DNA of 62,952 nt, the filler included, from Hyphochytrium catenoides (taxonomy: Eukaryota; Protista; Hyphochytriomycota): NCBI GenBank assembly GCA_900088475.1. It is 6 parts of 6 records of this genome, joined end to end, with 100 filler letters (N's around TTAATTAATTAA, not from the genome) between each part and the next. Parts side by side here need not be neighbours in the genome. Positions count along the whole stretch, not along the records: positions 37,536 to 50,821 come from FLMG01003504.1; 5 more parts are not named here. One strand, given 5' to 3'. The notes below the pieces were generated by a model that made no database searches, had not been told where the DNA came from, and saw only the letters and a program-made list of their open reading frames with translations. Shown here piece after piece: positions 37,535-48,590 of the stretch; position 1 is the first letter of the stretch, and every line of letters begins with the position of its first letter. Both the position numbers and the translations under genes were made by a program.

Positions 37535-38745
37535 NCGGCCCCAGACAGTCATTGGTGGGTTCCTCTGGACTTGCTTCGTCAGCAGAAGGCTCACTTTCTT
37601 TTTCTGCTTGTCGCGCTGCACTCGCTTCCCACTTACTTGCGCTGCTTCAGCGGCAGTTGCTTCTTCGCTCCCTATGATGGGAAACAAAGAGACATAGTCA
37701 TCATGTTGCTGCCTTTTTGCCTGTTTGAGTAGAAGGCCCCAGAGCGAGACTCGTCGATAACCACAATACGCCGCACAGAGATTCTCTTGGTCAGAGGATC
37801 ATACACGATAGCCATGGGTGCCAGAGTCATACCCTACAAAGATATACCGAGAGCTCCGCGCATCAAGCTTTCGCAGCATCGTCGACGGCTTTAAAGCATA
37901 CGCAAGTGAACCAAAGACGCGTAGATGACCAACATCAGGCGACTTGCCATACCACTTTTCGTAGGGGGTAGAGCCATCGAGGGAAGCAGTAGGACAGCGA
38001 TTGATCACATGAACTGCGGAGGCCAATGCAACTGCCCAAAAAAAACGAGGTAGGTCAGTAGCAATCAGAAGGCATCTCGTCGCCTGCATGACAGTTCTCA
38101 TCCAGCGTTCACAACAGCCGTTGCTAGAGGGAGAATAAGCAGGTGTCGGAGAGTGCAGGATGCCCCGGCGAGAGCACACTTTGTGTGCAGCACTGCTAAC
38201 GAACTCTCCCCGCGATCGGAGCGTAACTCCTTCACGCGCTCACCCGTCTGGTCCTCCATGAAAAGAATGAGTTCCTCCAACTTAGCTTCTGCTTCTCCTA
38301 TGCTCCGAAGAAATTGCACAAAGCACCTCCGAGAGTGATCATCCACCACGAGCAGAAAATGTACATAGCCTTGATAGCTACGAGTATTGACAATGCCAAC
38401 ATCGGCGTGCAAAAGTTCCAGCAGTCTTGTTGTCTTACGGGGCTGAGCGTGGTGTTGTCTTACGGGGCTGAGCGTGGTACTTCGCAACAATGCAGGTCTC
38501 ACAAAGACAGAGCTGCTGAGAAGCTCTATCAAGGGCTATGCCGGAAGCCTGCAGGGCTACTCTTCGAATATCTGTGTGGTTAAGATGATTAAGGCGTTTG
38601 TGCCACAGGGTGATAGGCTCTTGCTTGCTCGTAGCTGCGGCTAGTCTTGGAATAGAAGGGTCACTTTGTCCCCGTGCATCGTCATTGTCCGAGGAGTAAT
38701 AGACGGTTCCATTCGTCAAACCAATACGTCTCACTTGTTCTTGTG
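37535..38745 (-). mobile_element. Decayed Ty1/copia element: GAG-pre-integrase and integrase
   Basis: LWHKRLNH...CETC, LELLHADV, VDDHSR, LRSDRGE, AYSPSSNGCCER, TPYEKWYGKSPD..HLRVFGS, KLDARS..YIFVGY. Contains frameshifts, including one from a 25-bp tandem duplication at about 38428-38479. Confidence 0.92.
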
Positions 38746-41701
38746 TGCCATGTAGGAGAAGCAAGGGTCAGAAAGGTAGCGGCCCTAGCTGATGGGATCC
38801 CTGCAAAAGAGATTGATGGGGAGCTCGCTGACTGTGTGGAGTGCGCTGAAGCGAAGCTTACAACAAGGAGCCCCTTTCCTGTAGGTGAAGCTAAGCGAGC
38901 ATCTGAACCGCTGGGCCTCGTGCATGCTGATACGGTGCAGGTAGAAGCGAAGACACATCAGAGAGCACACTATGCTGTCATCTACACTGATGACAATAGC
39001 AGGTATAAGAAGGGATATCTGTTGAAAGCCAAAGCTGACCAGCCAGCAGCCTACGAAAAGTATCTTGCTGACTGCAAGCGGACTTCCTCTTACTCTACAC
39101 ACTGACAAGGGTGGAGAGTTTATTAACGAGAAATCTGTAACTCCAATTTGCAGGAGAGCATTGACCACATTACTACTGCGTCATACACTCCACAACGGAA
39201 CGGGATACCAGAGAGAGGCAATCGGTCTCTGATGAAATGGTAAGAGCAATTTTGTTCACAGCAGGTCTTTCAAAGTCCTTCTGGGGAGAGGCGCTGCAAG
39301 GGCGATCTACCGCTCAAACCGCCTCCCGACCAAAGCTGTCCAAGGCAAGGTGCCCTACGAGGCCTTCTACGGACGGAAACCCTCTCTTCGTCACATCAGG
39401 ACTTTTGGTTGACTTGCGGTAGCGCATGTCCCCAAGGTTACCGGAAGAAGCGGGACAAGACTGGACAGAGTGCCTCTTTCTGGGGTATGCTACGCAGAAG
39501 AAGGCTTACAAATAGCTTAGGCTGGATAATCGCAAGATCATGTTCTCCCGAGACGTTCGGTTCTTTGAGGACATCTTCCTTTCAAAGATGGTCTCCTTCA
39601 ACCAGACGAAGACGACCTGGCTGGTGCAGTTACTCAGGATGGAGTACTTGAGTTGGCAGCTGTTGACATGATGGAGGCTATAGAGGATGCTGACGGTGAG
39701 CAACTACCAGTCGAGAGAAGGTTGAGCTGGATCATCGACTACTGGCAGATAGCTCTGCGGCAGGAAGAAGGGAAGTCAGACCGGAGCACGAGAGGCGTCA
39801 ACCTGACAGGCCTTTCATGGTGTCTTCCTTCGTGGCCACAAATGACCCTACACAGTTACCCGTGGTCGAGCCTTAGGCCTACAAAGAGGCCCTAGCGTCA
39901 CCTCAGAGGGAGGAATGGCTAGAGGCCATGGCGTCCGAGATGACCTCTTTATCGGAGAACAATACGTGGGAGCTGGTTGACCTACCTACAGGCCGGAAGA
40001 CTGTAATATGCAAGTGGGTCTTCAAAGTTAAACGAGATAGCGAGGGACATATTGAGAGGTACAAGGCCAGGCTCTGTGCCAAAGGATTCTTCCAGAAATT
40101 TGGCGTTGACTACTCCGAGACGTCTTCTCCAGTGTATCCTTCCCTGCACAACGGACCTTTCTATCTTACTGCGCTGGCTGCAAAGGTATCTTTATCAAGC
40201 AACTAGTTAGTACGACGCCCTTCATGTATGACAAACTTGATGAGGATTATCCTTATGGGTAAGCCGGAGGGATTTACAAACCCTGGACAGCCCAAGCTGG
40301 TCTAAAAACTGCTGAGGTCCACCTATGTTCTAAAACAGAGTCCACATCAATGGAATATTGAAGTGCATCAGCCTTTCTTAGACATGGGTTTTACGAGGAG
40401 CATTGTGGACCCTTGTATCTACTACAAGAGAAGCGGGGACATGGTCATCCTGATCGCAATTTATGTGGATGATTTGCTCATTGCAAGTCATGACAAGACA
40501 GGCACGGACGAGATAGTCTCTCAACTTATTTCTTGTTACCAGGTGAAGGATCTTGGCCCCCCTCAACCATTTTCTGGGAATAGACTTCCAATATGAGAGG
40601 GAGAAGCGAGTCTTGGTCATGCTGCAAACAAGACACATTGAGTGCTTGCTTTCTACACTTGGCATGACTGATCAATAATTAAGCGTCTATTCCTCTTCAA
40701 CCAGGAATACAGCTCAGAAAGGTGGAGAGCGGTAGTCGAAACTTTGAGAAACAAGAAAGAATGGCAAAGACTCCCTATCAGAGTCTTCTTGGAGCTCATT
40801 TTTCTAGTCAAATGCACTCGGCCAGATTTAACCTTCACAGTTGGTCTCCATTGTCGCTTTCTTGATCAAACTGGTCAAGAGCACTGGGAAGCAGCCAAAC
40901 AGGTGCTGAAGATGACTAAAGACTTAGGTCTTGTACTTGGCTCGTTTGATTCCTCTATTACTACCGTTACCTCACCTATTACTGGTAGTGGCTCCCCTAA
41001 TCTTACGGGTTATGGTGATGCTGGTTGGTGGGCTGGAAACCTTATTAGTAGAAAATCCACTACTGGTCTAGTAGTTTACTTTGGTACGCGTCAGCTTCCC
41101 TGGCGATCACGCAAGCAGTCCTTGGTCACACTTTCTTTGACGGAGGCAGAGCTCATCCCTGACGGACTTGATCAAAGAAGTCATTTGGCTCAAGTTCTTG
41201 GTCTCAGAAATCTCAGGGACTGAATCGTCTGATGGTTCTCGTACCACTCTCTACAGGGATAGCGCTAATACTATTGGGTTGGTTCTCGAAGACTTTGTCT
41301 CTCTGCGCACCAAACATCTCGACGTGCGATACCACTTTGTGAAAGAGAGACTGGAGATGCATGGCTTGGACCTAAAACATTGGCCGACCAATGGGATGGT
41401 GGCGGTCGTTTTACCAAGCTTCTGGCGCGAGTACAGTTTGAGACTTGACTAAGCAGCATAGTCTCATCTCTCTACGATAGTAGACCATGGGCTGAGCTGA
41501 GGGGGAGTATGTCGGAATTGGAGATACAGCTCATCCTCTTCTCTACACTGCAACGGATGGCTATCATCGACAAGGAGCTCCGGTAGACAACATCAGAGGG
41601 GGACTCCAGCGATACCTCTACGGAGTGTACAGAGTGTCGTTTGATCTACGGAGTCTTGGTCTCACTCATCTGTTAGGGCTTGAAGGCTTCAGACTTTGAC
41701 A
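38746..41701 (+). mobile_element. Decayed Ty1/copia element (IN-RT-RNaseH) with PPT and probable 3' LTR (about 41510-41701)
   Basis: C..C..AK...PLGLVHAD, ENNTWELVDLP.GRK...CKWVFK.K...RYKARL.AKGF.QK.GVDY.ET, IYVDDLLI, TRPDL, RKSTTG, RTKHLDVRYHF. PPT GAGGGGGAG at 41499-41507 is followed by TGTCGG...TTTGACA. Confidence 0.92.
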
Positions 41702-44800: not shown

Positions 44801-46381
44801 TCATGCTGCCTCCTCCTCATCACCGCTGACCGGCACCGTCCCCAGAGCCTTCTTCGTGACCTTGTCCGCGCTCAAGACGTTCTCTGGTCCCACGATGTCA
44901 GAGACCTTGGTGCCCACGTAGAGTCGATCGGGGAGCTCGAAGCCGTTGAACTGAGAACCGGCTGCCGCGGTGTAGGCGCCCATGTTTGGGAAGTAGAGCC
45001 ACTCGCCCACATCCAGCATGGGCAGCTTCGCATCCTTCAGGATGCAATCGAAGCCGTCACAGGTGGGGCCCCAGATGCTGCAGGGCACGAGATCATCCTG
45101 GGAGGAGAGAACGGGAGATTTCTCAGCAGGTTTAGCGGTTGTCTTGAGGGCCACGGGCTGGACAGTGGCATGATCATAGAGAAGGCAGTTGAAGGAGCCA
45201 TACAGCCCGTCATTGACATAGTACATGTACGAAGGGATCGCGGCTTCAGTGTGCACGGCCATCGCGTGCGCCTGGCCGCCAATTTGGTGCCTCTCCAGGC
45301 TACGATCGAAGGCTGGGTAACTGGAGCTTTGGCGCTGTCCGGGGACCACCTTCCTACCGATAACATTGACGACGAGCGTATGGGAGGATCCGACGTAGTA
45401 GCGGCCCGGCTCTGCGATGATGCGGACCCCGCTCTCTTCAGGGAAGAGTTGGTCTAGTGCGGGGCGCAGCACGTCGCAGATCTGGCTGAATGTGATCGTG
45501 GAGTTGTTGTCACCTGGGAATCCGCCGCCGATGTCCAGCAGAGAAAGGTTGAGACCCAAGCGCGCCGCGATGTCGAAGGCCTTCCGTGCCCTCTGCACGG
45601 CATCCACAAACGCAAGCTCGCTGTAGCAGCCGCTGCCGACGTGGTAGGAGACCCCAACAACCTGCAGATCCAGCTCCTTCGCTGTCTTCAGCAAGAACTC
45701 CACGTCTCCAAGACCCGCACCATACTTGGAACCCATCTCACACTGAGACTTGGAGTCGTCGGCCTTGATCCGCAGTAGCAGCTGCGCGTCAGGATGATTG
45801 GCCTTCACTTTCCGCAGCTCATCGGCCGAGTCGAAGGTCATCTGCAGTACATTTTGCGCCCGTGCGAAGCGCAGGTGGGATAGCTGTTTGCAAGGATTCG
45901 CATAGATGATGCGGTCTGGCGTGACGCCAAGGCTGAGTACCGCCTCCATTTCGGGGCGAGAAGCGCAGTCAAAGTTGGCGCCGAGGCCCGCGAGCAGCTT
46001 GAGGACCAGAGGATCGGGGTTGCACTTTACAGCGTAGAAAGGGTGGACACGGGGCAGCTGGCGCTTCCACTCAGCGTGCTTCTCGGCAATGTCCTCTAGG
46101 TTCACGACGTAGAAAGCATCCTCCACGCCCGAGCGCACGTGCTGATCGATCACCTCTAAAATCTCCCCGAGCTCGGCGTCTGAGGCGGAGAGAGAGGAAC
46201 TGAAGCGCCAGCCTGCGCTGCCCATCTTTAGGGGGAGGCCAGCTGCGGATGGGGCGGGACGGAAGAACTGGCCATTGCGACCAAAAGCTGAGCGGCTGCT
46301 CAGCTGCGGTTGGGCCGTGGCGGCCCTGAGCGCTCCAATGCGGGCGAAGGGAGGTCGAAGTCCAAGTCTGGCGAACACCAT
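44801..46381 (-). CDS. ODC: Ornithine decarboxylase (fold-type III PLP enzyme), 526 aa, intronless CDS, with N-terminal extension
   Basis: PFYAVKCN (PLP Lys), FDCAS, IIYANPCK, GVSYHVGSG, LDIGGGFPG, IAEPGRY, YYVNDGLYGSFNC, WGPTCDGFD (catalytic Cys), NMGAYT...FNGF. Catalytic residues are intact. Confidence 0.96.
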   Translation of the reverse strand: MVFARLGLRPPFARIGALRAATAQPQLSSRSAFGRNGQFFRPAPSAAGLPLKMGSAGWRFSSSLSASDAELGEILEVIDQHVRSGVEDAFYVVNLEDIAEKHAEWKRQLPRVHPFYAVKCNPDPLVLKLLAGLGANFDCASRPEMEAVLSLGVTPDRIIYANPCKQLSHLRFARAQNVLQMTFDSADELRKVKANHPDAQLLLRIKADDSKSQCEMGSKYGAGLGDVEFLLKTAKELDLQVVGVSYHVGSGCYSELAFVDAVQRARKAFDIAARLGLNLSLLDIGGGFPGDNNSTITFSQICDVLRPALDQLFPEESGVRIIAEPGRYYVGSSHTLVVNVIGRKVVPGQRQSSSYPAFDRSLERHQIGGQAHAMAVHTEAAIPSYMYYVNDGLYGSFNCLLYDHATVQPVALKTTAKPAEKSPVLSSQDDLVPCSIWGPTCDGFDCILKDAKLPMLDVGEWLYFPNMGAYTAAAGSQFNGFELPDRLYVGTKVSDIVGPENVLSADKVTKKALGTVPVSGDEEEAA

Positions 46382-46449
46382 GCTACACAGGGACGGGACG
46401 GAGGTAGAAACCGTGTAACGAAAGCCGAAAGTCTCGCACGTAGCGAATG

Positions 46450-46763
46450 CTAATCACTCTCCCACTCCAACTCTGCGTTGAAGTGGTACGCCCCGGTCTT
46501 ATGACCGCCGCTGGAGACAAGAGAGAGAGAGAGAGAGAGCACGACAATGATCGGGGATCAGCAGAGGGGAATAGCTTTTGCAAGAATGAGAGGACCTAGT
46601 CGAGAGAGATATAAAGAGAACAAGACTCAGTCCACTGGAGAGGCTTCTGTTCTCTCTCTCTCTCGCGGTACTCTCTCTCTCTCTGAGACGAGCAGCTTCT
46701 TCTCTCTTACCTTGGGGCCAAAGGAAGCGGCGTGGAGCTGAGTAACAAGGTTGGCGGCGGAAT
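46450..46763 (-). promoter_or_regulatory. Spliced AUU-initiated upstream ORF (uCC-like) in the ODC 5' leader: join(46763-46711, 46510-46450), 37 aa
   Basis: TAA TAA CCA GCT ACA ATT CCG CCG CCA...CCA AG|GTAAG, 200-nt intron ending (CT)n TTGTCTCCAG|, then C GGC GGT...TTC AAC GCA GAG TTG GAG TGG GAG AGT GAT TAG. Peptide IPPPTLLLSSTPLPLAPSGGHKTGAYHFNAELEWESD*; the stop lies 68 nt before the ODC AUG. Confidence 0.8.
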
Positions 46764-47510
46764 TGTAGCTGGTTATTAGCTGGTTTCGCTCGCACCCAAC
46801 CGTCGAGCGAAAGGAACCACAGGAGGAAGTCGAGCCCTCAAGCGGTCAGGAGAGATGAGGAGAGAAGGCGCAGCTCTTTAGGAAGATTGACACCACCCGC
46901 GATGACCTTCTAGGGAGAGAGAGAGAGAAAGAGGAAAGGAGTTGGTTCACGCTCTAGAAAGACTGAATGCACTCCCACTTAGCAGGGAAGGAGAAGGAAC
47001 CAGGAGAACAGAAAGAAGAAGAAGCGCTCCGGGTGTCCCGGCTGAAGGAGTAATTGGGGAAGGGGAGAGAGGAAAAGGCGGGAGACAGAGCGCGGCTGTC
47101 AGGGTTCGAGAAGAAAGAGCTGGAAGGTCAGCGGACGATGGAAATCGCCAAGTGCTGGCCGCTGGTCTGGTGGAGCGAGCGAGCGATCAACGGCAGGCGT
47201 CACGCTAGAAGCAGCGAAGACGGAGCAGAATAAGAGGACGAACAAGAGAGAGAGCGCTTCGTCTGTCTTCTTTCTCTCTCTCTCTCTTCGTCTCTTTCTT
47301 TCTAGATTTTCCTTTTCCCTGTTCTGTTCTCGTCTCTCTGTCTCGCGGTCGGTGGGGGCTCCACAAGCACGAGCCCCAGCGCTAACAAAGACAGAGTAAA
47401 GAGAAAGACGAAAGAGAAGTGCAAAGGGTAAGATAAGAGAGACATGGAAAGGAGAGAGAGACTGTGTGAGAGAGGGACAGAGAGAGTGTGTGAGAGAGAG
47501 AAAGAGAGAG

Positions 47511-47551
<41 letters not shown>

Positions 47552-48590
47552 CCGCTGCAGCCAGAGGCGGCCGGTCTGTTTCACCTGGTCTTCTCTGCTA
47601 ATGGATCCTGGGCGTCTTATTATTTGCCTTGCGCATCACAGAATAAACAAACGGCGATCCAAGCAGAAAGCGAGTTCTGCGGTATTACTACTGCCCCCGC
47701 ACACCAGCCGCCGCACCAATAACTTCTCCCATCGCCTCCCCGTTCCCCTCTCGTAGGTAGCTCTGTCTTGGCATTAATCTGCTCCCTCCCGGTTTTATTG
47801 AGTAATACAGTACAGAATATATCACACGCATGTAATCGTCATATCTCTCCCTGGACTCTGTCTCGCACATGGAGGTCGGTATGGAAGACCAAAGCAGCGA
47901 AAAGGCATGTCGCCGCCACTGGTTGGAGGATCCCTAGTAATAATACTTACGTCCAGTTAATTAAGCAATCTAATACCCTCGCAAGTGAGAAGTGGTAATA
48001 TCCTTCTTGTCGTTTCCTTCAGCCAATAATTAGGGGTGGCGTCCGACCTCTGGGGTATGTTAGGCTCCCCCCTCCCCCGCGGGTGGGAAGTGCTAGGGGC
48101 AGCAGATAGAGGTGCAGACCGCAGAGGACTCATGATGGAGGCCTGCACATCCTTGCCTCTTTTTCTCTCTCTCTCTCTTTTTCTCTCTCTCTCTCTTTTT
48201 CTCTNNNNNNNNNNNNNNNNNNNNNNNNNNNNNNNNNNNNNNNNNNNNNNNNNNNNNNNNNNNNNNNNNNNACGATCGACACAGCTTCACACGTCTGTAA
48301 CTGCCCTGGCGATGTACAGCACACAGGCGGCAGGAAGGGAAGCAGGGAGGAGAGTAGCCCCGCATCCCCCTTGGGGAAGCCAGATGGCAGTCTGCCCCCT
48401 CTCCTTCTGTGGCCTATTACTACATATCCAAATTTGAATCCTTGGCTCTTCGCTGTGTAACAGACAGTCCAGCAACACTCTTACTACGGCGGAAGGTGCC
48501 TCAAACAGGATCCGAGATCCAACGGCTAGGCAACCCTTCTCTCTCTCTCTCTCTCTCTGTCTGTCTCTCTCTCTTTCTCTCTCTCTTTCC

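Follow-up and report, generated by a model that had tools for sequence, protein, structure and literature searches.

The 5' leader of an ornithine decarboxylase (ODC) gene on the minus strand of the window, a 62,952-nucleotide (nt) stretch of Hyphochytrium catenoides DNA, contains a short reading frame whose peptide ends like animal AZIN1's upstream conserved coding region (uCC). This element is probably a uCC of the ODC/AZIN1 type, with a spliced AUU start, that feedback-represses ODC. The frame ends in ...TGAYHFNAELEWESD-stop; its stop codon closes at 46450, 68 nt 5' of the ODC start codon (ATG at 46381) and in a separate frame. Similar peptides precede ODC in three named carriers, Aphanomyces euteiches, a Coccolithus-like haptophyte and Cymbomonas tetramitiformis. 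Judged by the encoded peptide, the uCC is thus present outside opisthokonts, as the original prediction had proposed from the window alone.

The leader frame and its likeness to the AZIN1 uCC

Read on the minus strand, the leader contains TAA TAA (46778-46773), then CCA GCT ACA, then ATT (46763-46761). The tandem in-frame stops close the frame upstream, so that the translation of 46778-46711 begins with two stops. The ATT is the proposed near-cognate AUU start, in the context ACA-AUU-C (A at -3, C at +4), and is followed by Pro-Pro-Pro; IPP also opens the human AZIN1 and Aphanomyces uCCs. From there the frame reads IPPPTLLLSSTPLPLAP up to CCA AG/GTAAGA, where exon 1 (46763-46711) ends after the first 2 nt of a Ser codon. 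The putative GT-AG leader intron (46710-46511, 200 nt) finishes with a (CT)n tract and CAG, and has comparative support. Exon 2 (46510-46450) reads (S)GGHKTGAYHFNAELEWESD and then TAG (46452-46450). Once spliced, the frame has 37 sense codons, contains no AUG and differs in frame from ODC. The tandem stops, the ATT context, the 200-nt GT-AG interval and the AUG-free 37-codon frame are all found in the sequence as originally described.

The 68 nt that separate the uCC stop from the ODC start (46382-46449) are also free of AUG. This spacer belongs to a stretch of 1061 nt 5' of the ODC AUG (46382-47442) that has no ATG on the coding strand. A first-order Markov model predicts 3.8 ATG in this stretch, with a probability of 0.019 for none, and mononucleotide shuffles contain 12.1 on average, none of 5000 being devoid of ATG. 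The stretch is consistent with a long AUG-free leader.

The animal peptide given in the original prediction, with an IPP start and an F-N-A-E-P-P-W-E-P-S end, proved to be that of human AZIN1, which according to PMC9648851 begins IPPKK and ends FDFNAEPPWEPS-stop. When the window tail YHFNAELEWESD-stop is aligned with human FDFNAEPPWEPS-stop from the stop codon, F, N, A, E, W and E are common and three sense codons separate Trp from the stop in both. Hence, both ends of the predicted peptide, the IPP start and the tail, match the animal uCC. The tails of the relatives described below, of the form FDFNAE-x-E-W-F-P-S-x-stop, can be aligned in the same way. Comparison of the non-animal consensus with human F-D-F-N-A-E-P-P-W-E-P-S-stop shows agreement at 10 of 11 constrained positions, and the sole disagreement is E versus P directly before Trp. 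In the AZIN1 uCC, the last ten codons have been defined by function, as shifting them out of frame abolishes polyamine-dependent repression (PMC2811004). It is with this segment that the ten C-terminal residues of the window uCC align.

The resemblance to the uCC of AZIN1 and animal ODC homologues also concerns layout. Both elements are parts of ODC-family 5' leaders, where they precede the main reading frame at a short distance and in a different frame. Both contain no AUG and end in F-N-A-E-x-x-W-E, and the proposed start of the window element, like that of the animal one, is a weak AUU followed by Pro-Pro, tens of codons 5' of the conserved tail. On the other hand, several features differ. 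P-P-W is replaced by L-E-W in the window and by x-E-W family-wide. The window peptide ends in E-S-D-stop and lacks the Pro-Ser-stop ending, whereas human AZIN1 ends in E-P-S-stop and the relatives mostly in F-P-S/C/A-x-stop, where an extra residue separates P-S from the stop. The window uCC is shorter (37 codons against 52, with 34 against 49 from start to Trp) and is putatively split by a leader intron. Finally, the window type occurs in ODC genes of stramenopiles, haptophytes and chlorophytes, none of which appear in the accessible literature on the AZIN1-type uCC. The animal element itself was reportedly described by Ivanov, Loughran & Atkins in 2008 and by Ivanov et al. in 2018, and is reviewed in PMC2811004, PMC9082881 and PMC10855120.

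Conservation in ODC leaders outside opisthokonts

Within 50.9 kb of the window, the DNA pattern TTYAAYGCNGARNNNNNNTGG, which corresponds to F-N-A-E-x-x-W, has a single match (46462-46482, minus strand); it matched none of 100 dinucleotide-preserving shuffles. It forms part of a longer conserved core, T-G-A-Y-H-F-N-A-E-L-E-W (46462-46497), whose E-W codons (46467-46462) are the presumed stall site.

For comparison, we read the leaders in the DNA around the ODC genes of the nearest relatives, without using the motif as a search key. A sequence sister to oomycetes in the ODC tree (L006) carries the tail ...SPCGGHRTGVFDFNAELEWFPSK-stop (also given as ...GGHRTGVFDFNAELEWFPSK-stop). In L007, whose ODC is 97-100% identical to members of a cluster including that of Coccolithus braarudii, an AUG-started upstream open reading frame (uORF) ends in TGAFDFNAEPEWFPCI-stop. 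Haptophyte-like contigs L011-L013 have ...FVNKNPGRLCTGRDTGAYDFNAEVEWFQSGV-stop (...TGAYDFNAEVEWFQSGV-stop in L011). In Aphanomyces euteiches (L003/L004), the tail ...KIPPETLLSTTLGASTPHLTRRLVFDFNVEPEWFPCR-stop (also ...LVFDFNVEPEWFPCR-stop) is located 18 nt 5' of the ODC ATG, and in the NCBI assembly of Cymbomonas tetramitiformis (L026), ...HRSGSYDFNSEPEWFPAL-stop (also ...SGSYDFNSEPEWFPAL-stop) is located about 110 nt 5' of the annotated gene start. L001/L002 contain a truncated-looking version, ...NSELEWFPSQ-stop. The shared core, just 5' of ODC, is TG-x-[YF]-[DH]-F-N-[ASV]-E-x-E-W, usually followed by F-P-[SCA]-x-stop. The Ala of NAE is replaced by V in Aphanomyces and by S in Cymbomonas; a strict NAE pattern misses both, and their motifs were identified with a looser one.

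Across the 12-codon core of the six sequences found through ODC, pairwise differences per site are 0.22, 0.24 and 0.52 at codon positions 1, 2 and 3. All 14 sequences compared have the same N, E, E and W, written with different codons (AAC or AAT, GAA or GAG), whereas the residue at position -2 from Trp is unconstrained and can be L, P, V or E. Conservation at the amino-acid level is strongest near the C-terminus, where the core is common to the 14 sequences. Because third positions differ about twice as much as first and second ones and invariant residues are written with varying codons, selection acts on the encoded peptide. The comparison of leaders called for in the original prediction thus came out in favor of a conserved FNAExxW-type peptide 5' of ODC. 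A functionless frame, open by chance in a non-coding leader, is effectively refuted by these data and retains next to no credence: the pattern is unique in the window, recurs before ODC in many lineages and shows third-position-biased substitution. Two other explanations were rejected. The uCC cannot be an N-terminal extension of ODC, being out of frame and stop-terminated in all members, and a conserved RNA structure does not explain why substitutions cluster at third codon positions.

When JGI metagenome contigs were scanned blindly for the degenerate codon pattern T-G-x-[FY]-[DH]-F-N-A-E-x-x-W, 11 loci were returned, nine of them with an ODC frame directly 3' (tblastn E values of 1e-100 to 1e-145). 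The named neighbors of these ODCs are haptophytes (a Prymnesium metagenome-assembled genome, Emiliania, Haptolina and Coccolithus). One of the 11 loci was discarded as a chance match within a long bacterial-type reading frame.

Another of the 11 loci, a metatranscriptome contig (L016:1-1558), carries a typical uCC, ...NPGFRSLGHSTGAYDFNAEEEWFPSY-stop, followed by a reading frame for COP9 signalosome subunit 3 (Pfam COP9_hel_rpt and PCI) and not by ODC. This arrangement reflects a chimera of the assembly or else a second gene with the same leader.

Some observations temper this picture of a conserved family. The metagenome loci match the peptide pattern by construction, so that only their position before ODC is independent evidence. 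In addition, no motif was recognized 5' of ODC in L008-L010, L014 and one Nematostella paralogue (P0058), and no recognizable uCC was seen within 2.5 kb 5' of ODC in Phytophthora kernoviae (L027:1-2500). Since the leaders of several ODCs have no recognizable motif, the uCC appears dispensable in some lineages. The Phytophthora result, compared with the saprolegnialean carrier Aphanomyces, suggests loss or strong divergence of the uCC in Peronosporales.

In a 68-row ODC tree, a clade with a Shimodaira-Hasegawa-like approximate likelihood ratio (SH-aLRT) support of 97 unites animals, fungi and Sphaeroforma with one colponemid and three EukProt sequences whose origin is unknown, and excludes the window ODC. 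The latter groups weakly with marine sequences, beside stramenopile and haptophyte clades. The tree therefore places the window ODC outside the opisthokont clade, though not decisively, as a sister position to that clade was not rejected by the approximately unbiased test (p = 0.46). The x-E-W type of its uCC and the N-terminal match to Aphanomyces described below point towards the stramenopile side. The non-opisthokont claim is in any case independent of the window organism, because the uCC is found in Aphanomyces euteiches, a Coccolithus-like haptophyte and Cymbomonas tetramitiformis.

Thus far, uCCs are known in animals, Pezizomycotina, Basidiomycota and Zygomycota, for which independent origins have been proposed (PMC2811004). 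A search of the literature for 'upstream conserved coding' together with protist or algal groups gave no report outside opisthokonts, the primary uCC papers and their supplements lying outside its scope; the tentative novelty claim of the original prediction agrees with this search. The range of the uCC looks wider than described, with stramenopile, haptophyte and green-algal carriers that have x-E-W in place of P-P-W.

How this range arose can be read in two ways. We give about even weight to a single ancient element, in which the F-D-F-N-A-E-x-x-W uCC would already have been present in the ODC leader of the ancestor that opisthokonts shared with stramenopiles, haptophytes and green algae, near the root of extant eukaryotes. 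In that case, the x-E-W pause would be ancestral and P-P-W an animal derivative, the sensing determinant would be the N-A-E-x-x-W nascent peptide and not the diprolyl, and the haptophyte switch would have been tightened by an ODC AUG inside E-W. The animal-type tail in an oomycete, haptophytes, a prasinophyte green alga and the window organism points to one origin more than 1 billion years ago, and if so the uCC would be one of the oldest conserved regulatory uORFs. The other reading, convergence of the protist/algal and animal peptides under the same selective pressure, seems to us quite improbable. It could draw on the independent uCC origins in four opisthokont groups argued for in a 2010 review (PMC2811004), on the shortness of the peptides and on N-terminal halves that are not alignable between human and protists. 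However, the human tail agrees with the protist consensus (F-D-F-N-A-E-x-x-W-x-P-S) at 10 of 11 constrained positions and at a similar distance from the stop; a rough estimate from amino-acid frequencies puts the chance of such agreement at about 1e-11 per position. Both peptides also start with a weak codon followed by Pro. Whatever its origin, the sequence signature can be used for finding uCCs in any transcriptome.

Proposed start codon, leader intron and mechanism

We infer splicing of the leader and usage of the AUU from comparison of the N-terminal part. The exon 1 peptide of the window, IPPPTLL, matches the start of the Aphanomyces uCC, IPPETLL, at 6 of 7 positions. A 6/7 match to IPPETLL anywhere in the 932-nt leader arose in only 6 of 3000 simulated leaders. 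The Aphanomyces frame would start at the homologous place with AUC-CCA-CCC, with A at -3 as for AUU 46763. Weak presumed starts are the rule in the family: they are non-AUG codons in the window, L006 and Aphanomyces, whereas most haptophyte-like contigs have an AUG in weak context (C at +4, and either T or C at -3). Most members have Pro as their second codon. Although N-terminal halves are barely alignable, the distance from presumed start to Trp is 32-37 codons in 10 of 14 non-animal sequences. It is 34 codons in the spliced window frame and 28 from the unspliced AUU. The IPPxTLL match and the 34-codon spacing therefore favor the spliced AUU-IPP start, and we regard this model of the window uCC as likely.

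Other findings argue against it. GT-AG pairs that keep the frame open into the core are common in the leader (32 of 279), so that an open spliced frame alone is weak evidence. Both RNA contigs found are short and lie on the ODC coding sequence, none covering the leader or the 46711/46510 junction. Moreover, the unspliced frame offers a start of its own: it is open from 46557, after TGA 46560-46558, and contains an in-frame ATT (46548-46546) whose context, with A at -3 and G at +4, is better than that of AUU 46763. With the intron retained, or with transcription starting inside it, the same element with the same function would be a 32-codon uCC read from AUU 46548 (or from AUC 46551 or GUG 46542) as I-V-V-L-S-L-S-L-S-L-V-S-S-GGHKTG.... 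The restriction of the RNA contigs to the coding sequence would agree with such a start. Yet its N-terminus would come from a (CT)n tract that resembles the polypyrimidine tract of an intron, a spacing of 28 codons does not fit the 32-37 of the family, and it loses both the IPPxTLL match to Aphanomyces and the human IPP start. We hold this retained-intron version to be rather unlikely and continue with the spliced AUU start.

In Cymbomonas, a pyrimidine tract followed by CAG (L026:3809-3830) precedes the conserved Phe by nine whole codons and one split codon. This candidate acceptor is identical in position and phase (2) to the acceptor of the window leader intron. No upstream exon 1 for it passed strict criteria. 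Conservation of the leader-intron position between the window and Cymbomonas is speculative.

The AZIN1 uCC functions by leaky scanning, a polyamine-enhanced pause, queuing of scanning ribosomes and little reinitiation, and a queuing model has been given for PPWxxPS-stop (PMC9082881, PMC10855120). In a corresponding mechanism for the window, the 200-nt leader intron would be removed and scanning ribosomes would meet the weak AUU 46763, which opens the 37-codon frame. Most ribosomes would scan past it and ODC would be translated. At high polyamine levels, ribosomes translating the uCC would pause at the invariant N-x-E-x-E-W and/or at termination. The pause would block the leader, and scanning ribosomes would queue about 34 codons back to the start, giving more initiation there. 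Ribosomes finishing the uCC would reinitiate poorly; less ODC would be made, amounting to feedback repression of polyamine synthesis.

Queuing fits the window-type family because of its conserved spacing, weak starts and short or absent intercistronic spacer. The distance from uCC end to ODC start is 18-70 nt, or the two overlap. In L007/L019 (nt 158-168), L011, L017, L020 and L021, the codons for E-W contain the ODC AUG in a strong context (GA-AUG-G, G at both -3 and +4), from which an N-terminal extension beginning MV... is read. The first ODC codons (MVP...) thereby coincide with the final 4-5 codons of the uCC (EWFPxx). In this haptophyte-type arrangement, a pause at E-W would leave the ribosome on top of the ODC start codon. 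The window has no such overlap, since its Glu codon is GAG.

The nature of the pause is a difficulty in transferring the AZIN1 model. The published uCC mechanism rests on PPW, and the diprolyl is missing in the window (L-E-W) as well as in 14 of 14 non-animal members, all of which have x-E-W with x = L, P, V or E. The replacement of the stall core by LE noted in the original prediction is therefore no quirk of this gene. As the diprolyl is the only element of the AZIN1 uCC with a reported eIF5A dependence, the eIF5A link is not automatically transferable. Without P-P, the pause could come from an E-W that is slow and eIF5A-dependent in the N-A-E context, from another form of polyamine sensing by the nascent peptide, or from termination through the P-S near the stop. 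We infer polyamine or eIF5A responsiveness of the window uCC by homology.

A conserved inhibitory uORF could also operate without eIF5A-based polyamine sensing, as a constitutive brake, as a sensor of ornithine, arginine or putrescine, or through a polyamine-binding nascent peptide that stalls in the exit tunnel. We consider this unlikely, though somewhat less so than the retained intron. The P-P that constitutes the eIF5A-dependent part in animals is indeed lacking in all 14 non-animal sequences, and a conserved F-N-A-E-x-E-W would suit a tunnel-interacting arrest peptide. Against this stand the location of the element on the rate-limiting enzyme of polyamine synthesis and the fact that it shares the AZIN1 segment needed for polyamine-dependent repression (PMC2811004). 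In addition, P-S, which PMC10855120 links with eIF5A-dependent termination on HOL1, is kept close to the stop by many members.

Comparison with other uORFs of the polyamine pathway places the eIF5A-linked reading in context. The fungal ODC uCCs of Pezizomycotina, Basidiomycota and Zygomycota are likewise conserved regions of ODC leaders with non-AUG initiation, 22-100 codons long, and share little sequence with the animal ones beyond two adjacent prolines near the C-terminus (PMC2811004). Compared by description only, the window family differs from them in having the animal F-N-A-E..W core and no adjacent prolines. The HOL1 uORF of S. cerevisiae, MLLLPS-stop, which undergoes polyamine/eIF5A-controlled termination (cited in PMC10855120), is also a short conserved uORF on a polyamine-pathway mRNA. 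Many window relatives have P-S one residue before the stop; in contrast, HOL1 encodes a transporter, its uORF has a different peptide and starts with AUG, and the window tail E-S-D-stop has no Pro-Ser. Peptide-dependent, polyamine-responsive stalling in mRNAs of polyamine biosynthesis is also a feature of the AMD1/AdoMetDC uORF (MAGDIS) and of plant AdoMetDC CPuORFs. These have unrelated peptides, AUG starts and a different enzyme, and they stall at termination.

The family thus offers a natural set of variants, without Pro-Pro and with N-x-E-x-E-W and the spacing to a weak start kept, for testing what the ribosome, eIF5A and polyamines read. Translational polyamine feedback is predicted in groups of ecological and agricultural importance, such as coccolithophores, prymnesiophytes and Aphanomyces, in which ODC regulation is little studied.

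The ODC gene, leader variants and surroundings

ODC is the sole clear gene in its piece of the window. The main reading frame (44801-46381, minus strand) is a single exon of 526 amino acids with matches to Pfam PF02784 (Orn_Arg_deC_N, E 1.6e-82) and PF00278 (Orn_DAP_Arg_deC, E 8.7e-24), preceded by an N-terminal extension of 70-90 amino acids before the conserved domain. Its best protein matches are eukaryotic ODCs with 48-56% identity, which identifies it as an ODC. A search for an exact protein match gave none, and its closest relative in the protein database is 56% identical. The two RNA contigs are about 100% identical to the coding sequence (193 nt on 45138-45330, and 151 nt from a soil metatranscriptome on 45555-45705); the ODC gene is therefore transcribed, and the near-identity of the soil contig to the window shows that its organism inhabits soil.

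The ODCs that carry a uCC (46381-46170 in the window; L007, L011, L017, L020, L021 and L023) have N-terminal extensions of 50-90 residues rich in R, A, S and L, which resemble organelle-targeting presequences. The window ODC begins MVFARLGLRPPF..., and its second in-frame Met is residue 53.

A second haplotype is present in the DNA runs of the same organism. It differs by five single-nucleotide polymorphisms (SNPs) and one indel over about 100 nt of the putative leader intron (46551-46653), the read-derived allelic SNPs and indel being located at 46586-46623, and by eight differences in 115 nt at 47024-47138. None of its variants was seen in uCC exon 1, exon 2 or the spacer. The source appears to be a heterozygous diploid.

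Several (CT)n/(GA)n tracts are found in and upstream of the leader intron (46511-46550, 46650-46685 and 47268-47303), and an assembly gap, a run of N at about 48200-48270, has CT/GA microsatellites on its flanks. In read mapping, these microsatellites draw thousands of unrelated contigs, and Logan contigs break at the intron acceptor.

Further away, degenerate remnants of Ty1/copia-like retrotransposons occupy 37799-41223 on both strands. They comprise integrase-like and RNase H-like fragments judged by eye, of which 40744-41223 has no Pfam match, and an integrase SH3-like domain match at 37799-38179 on the minus strand.

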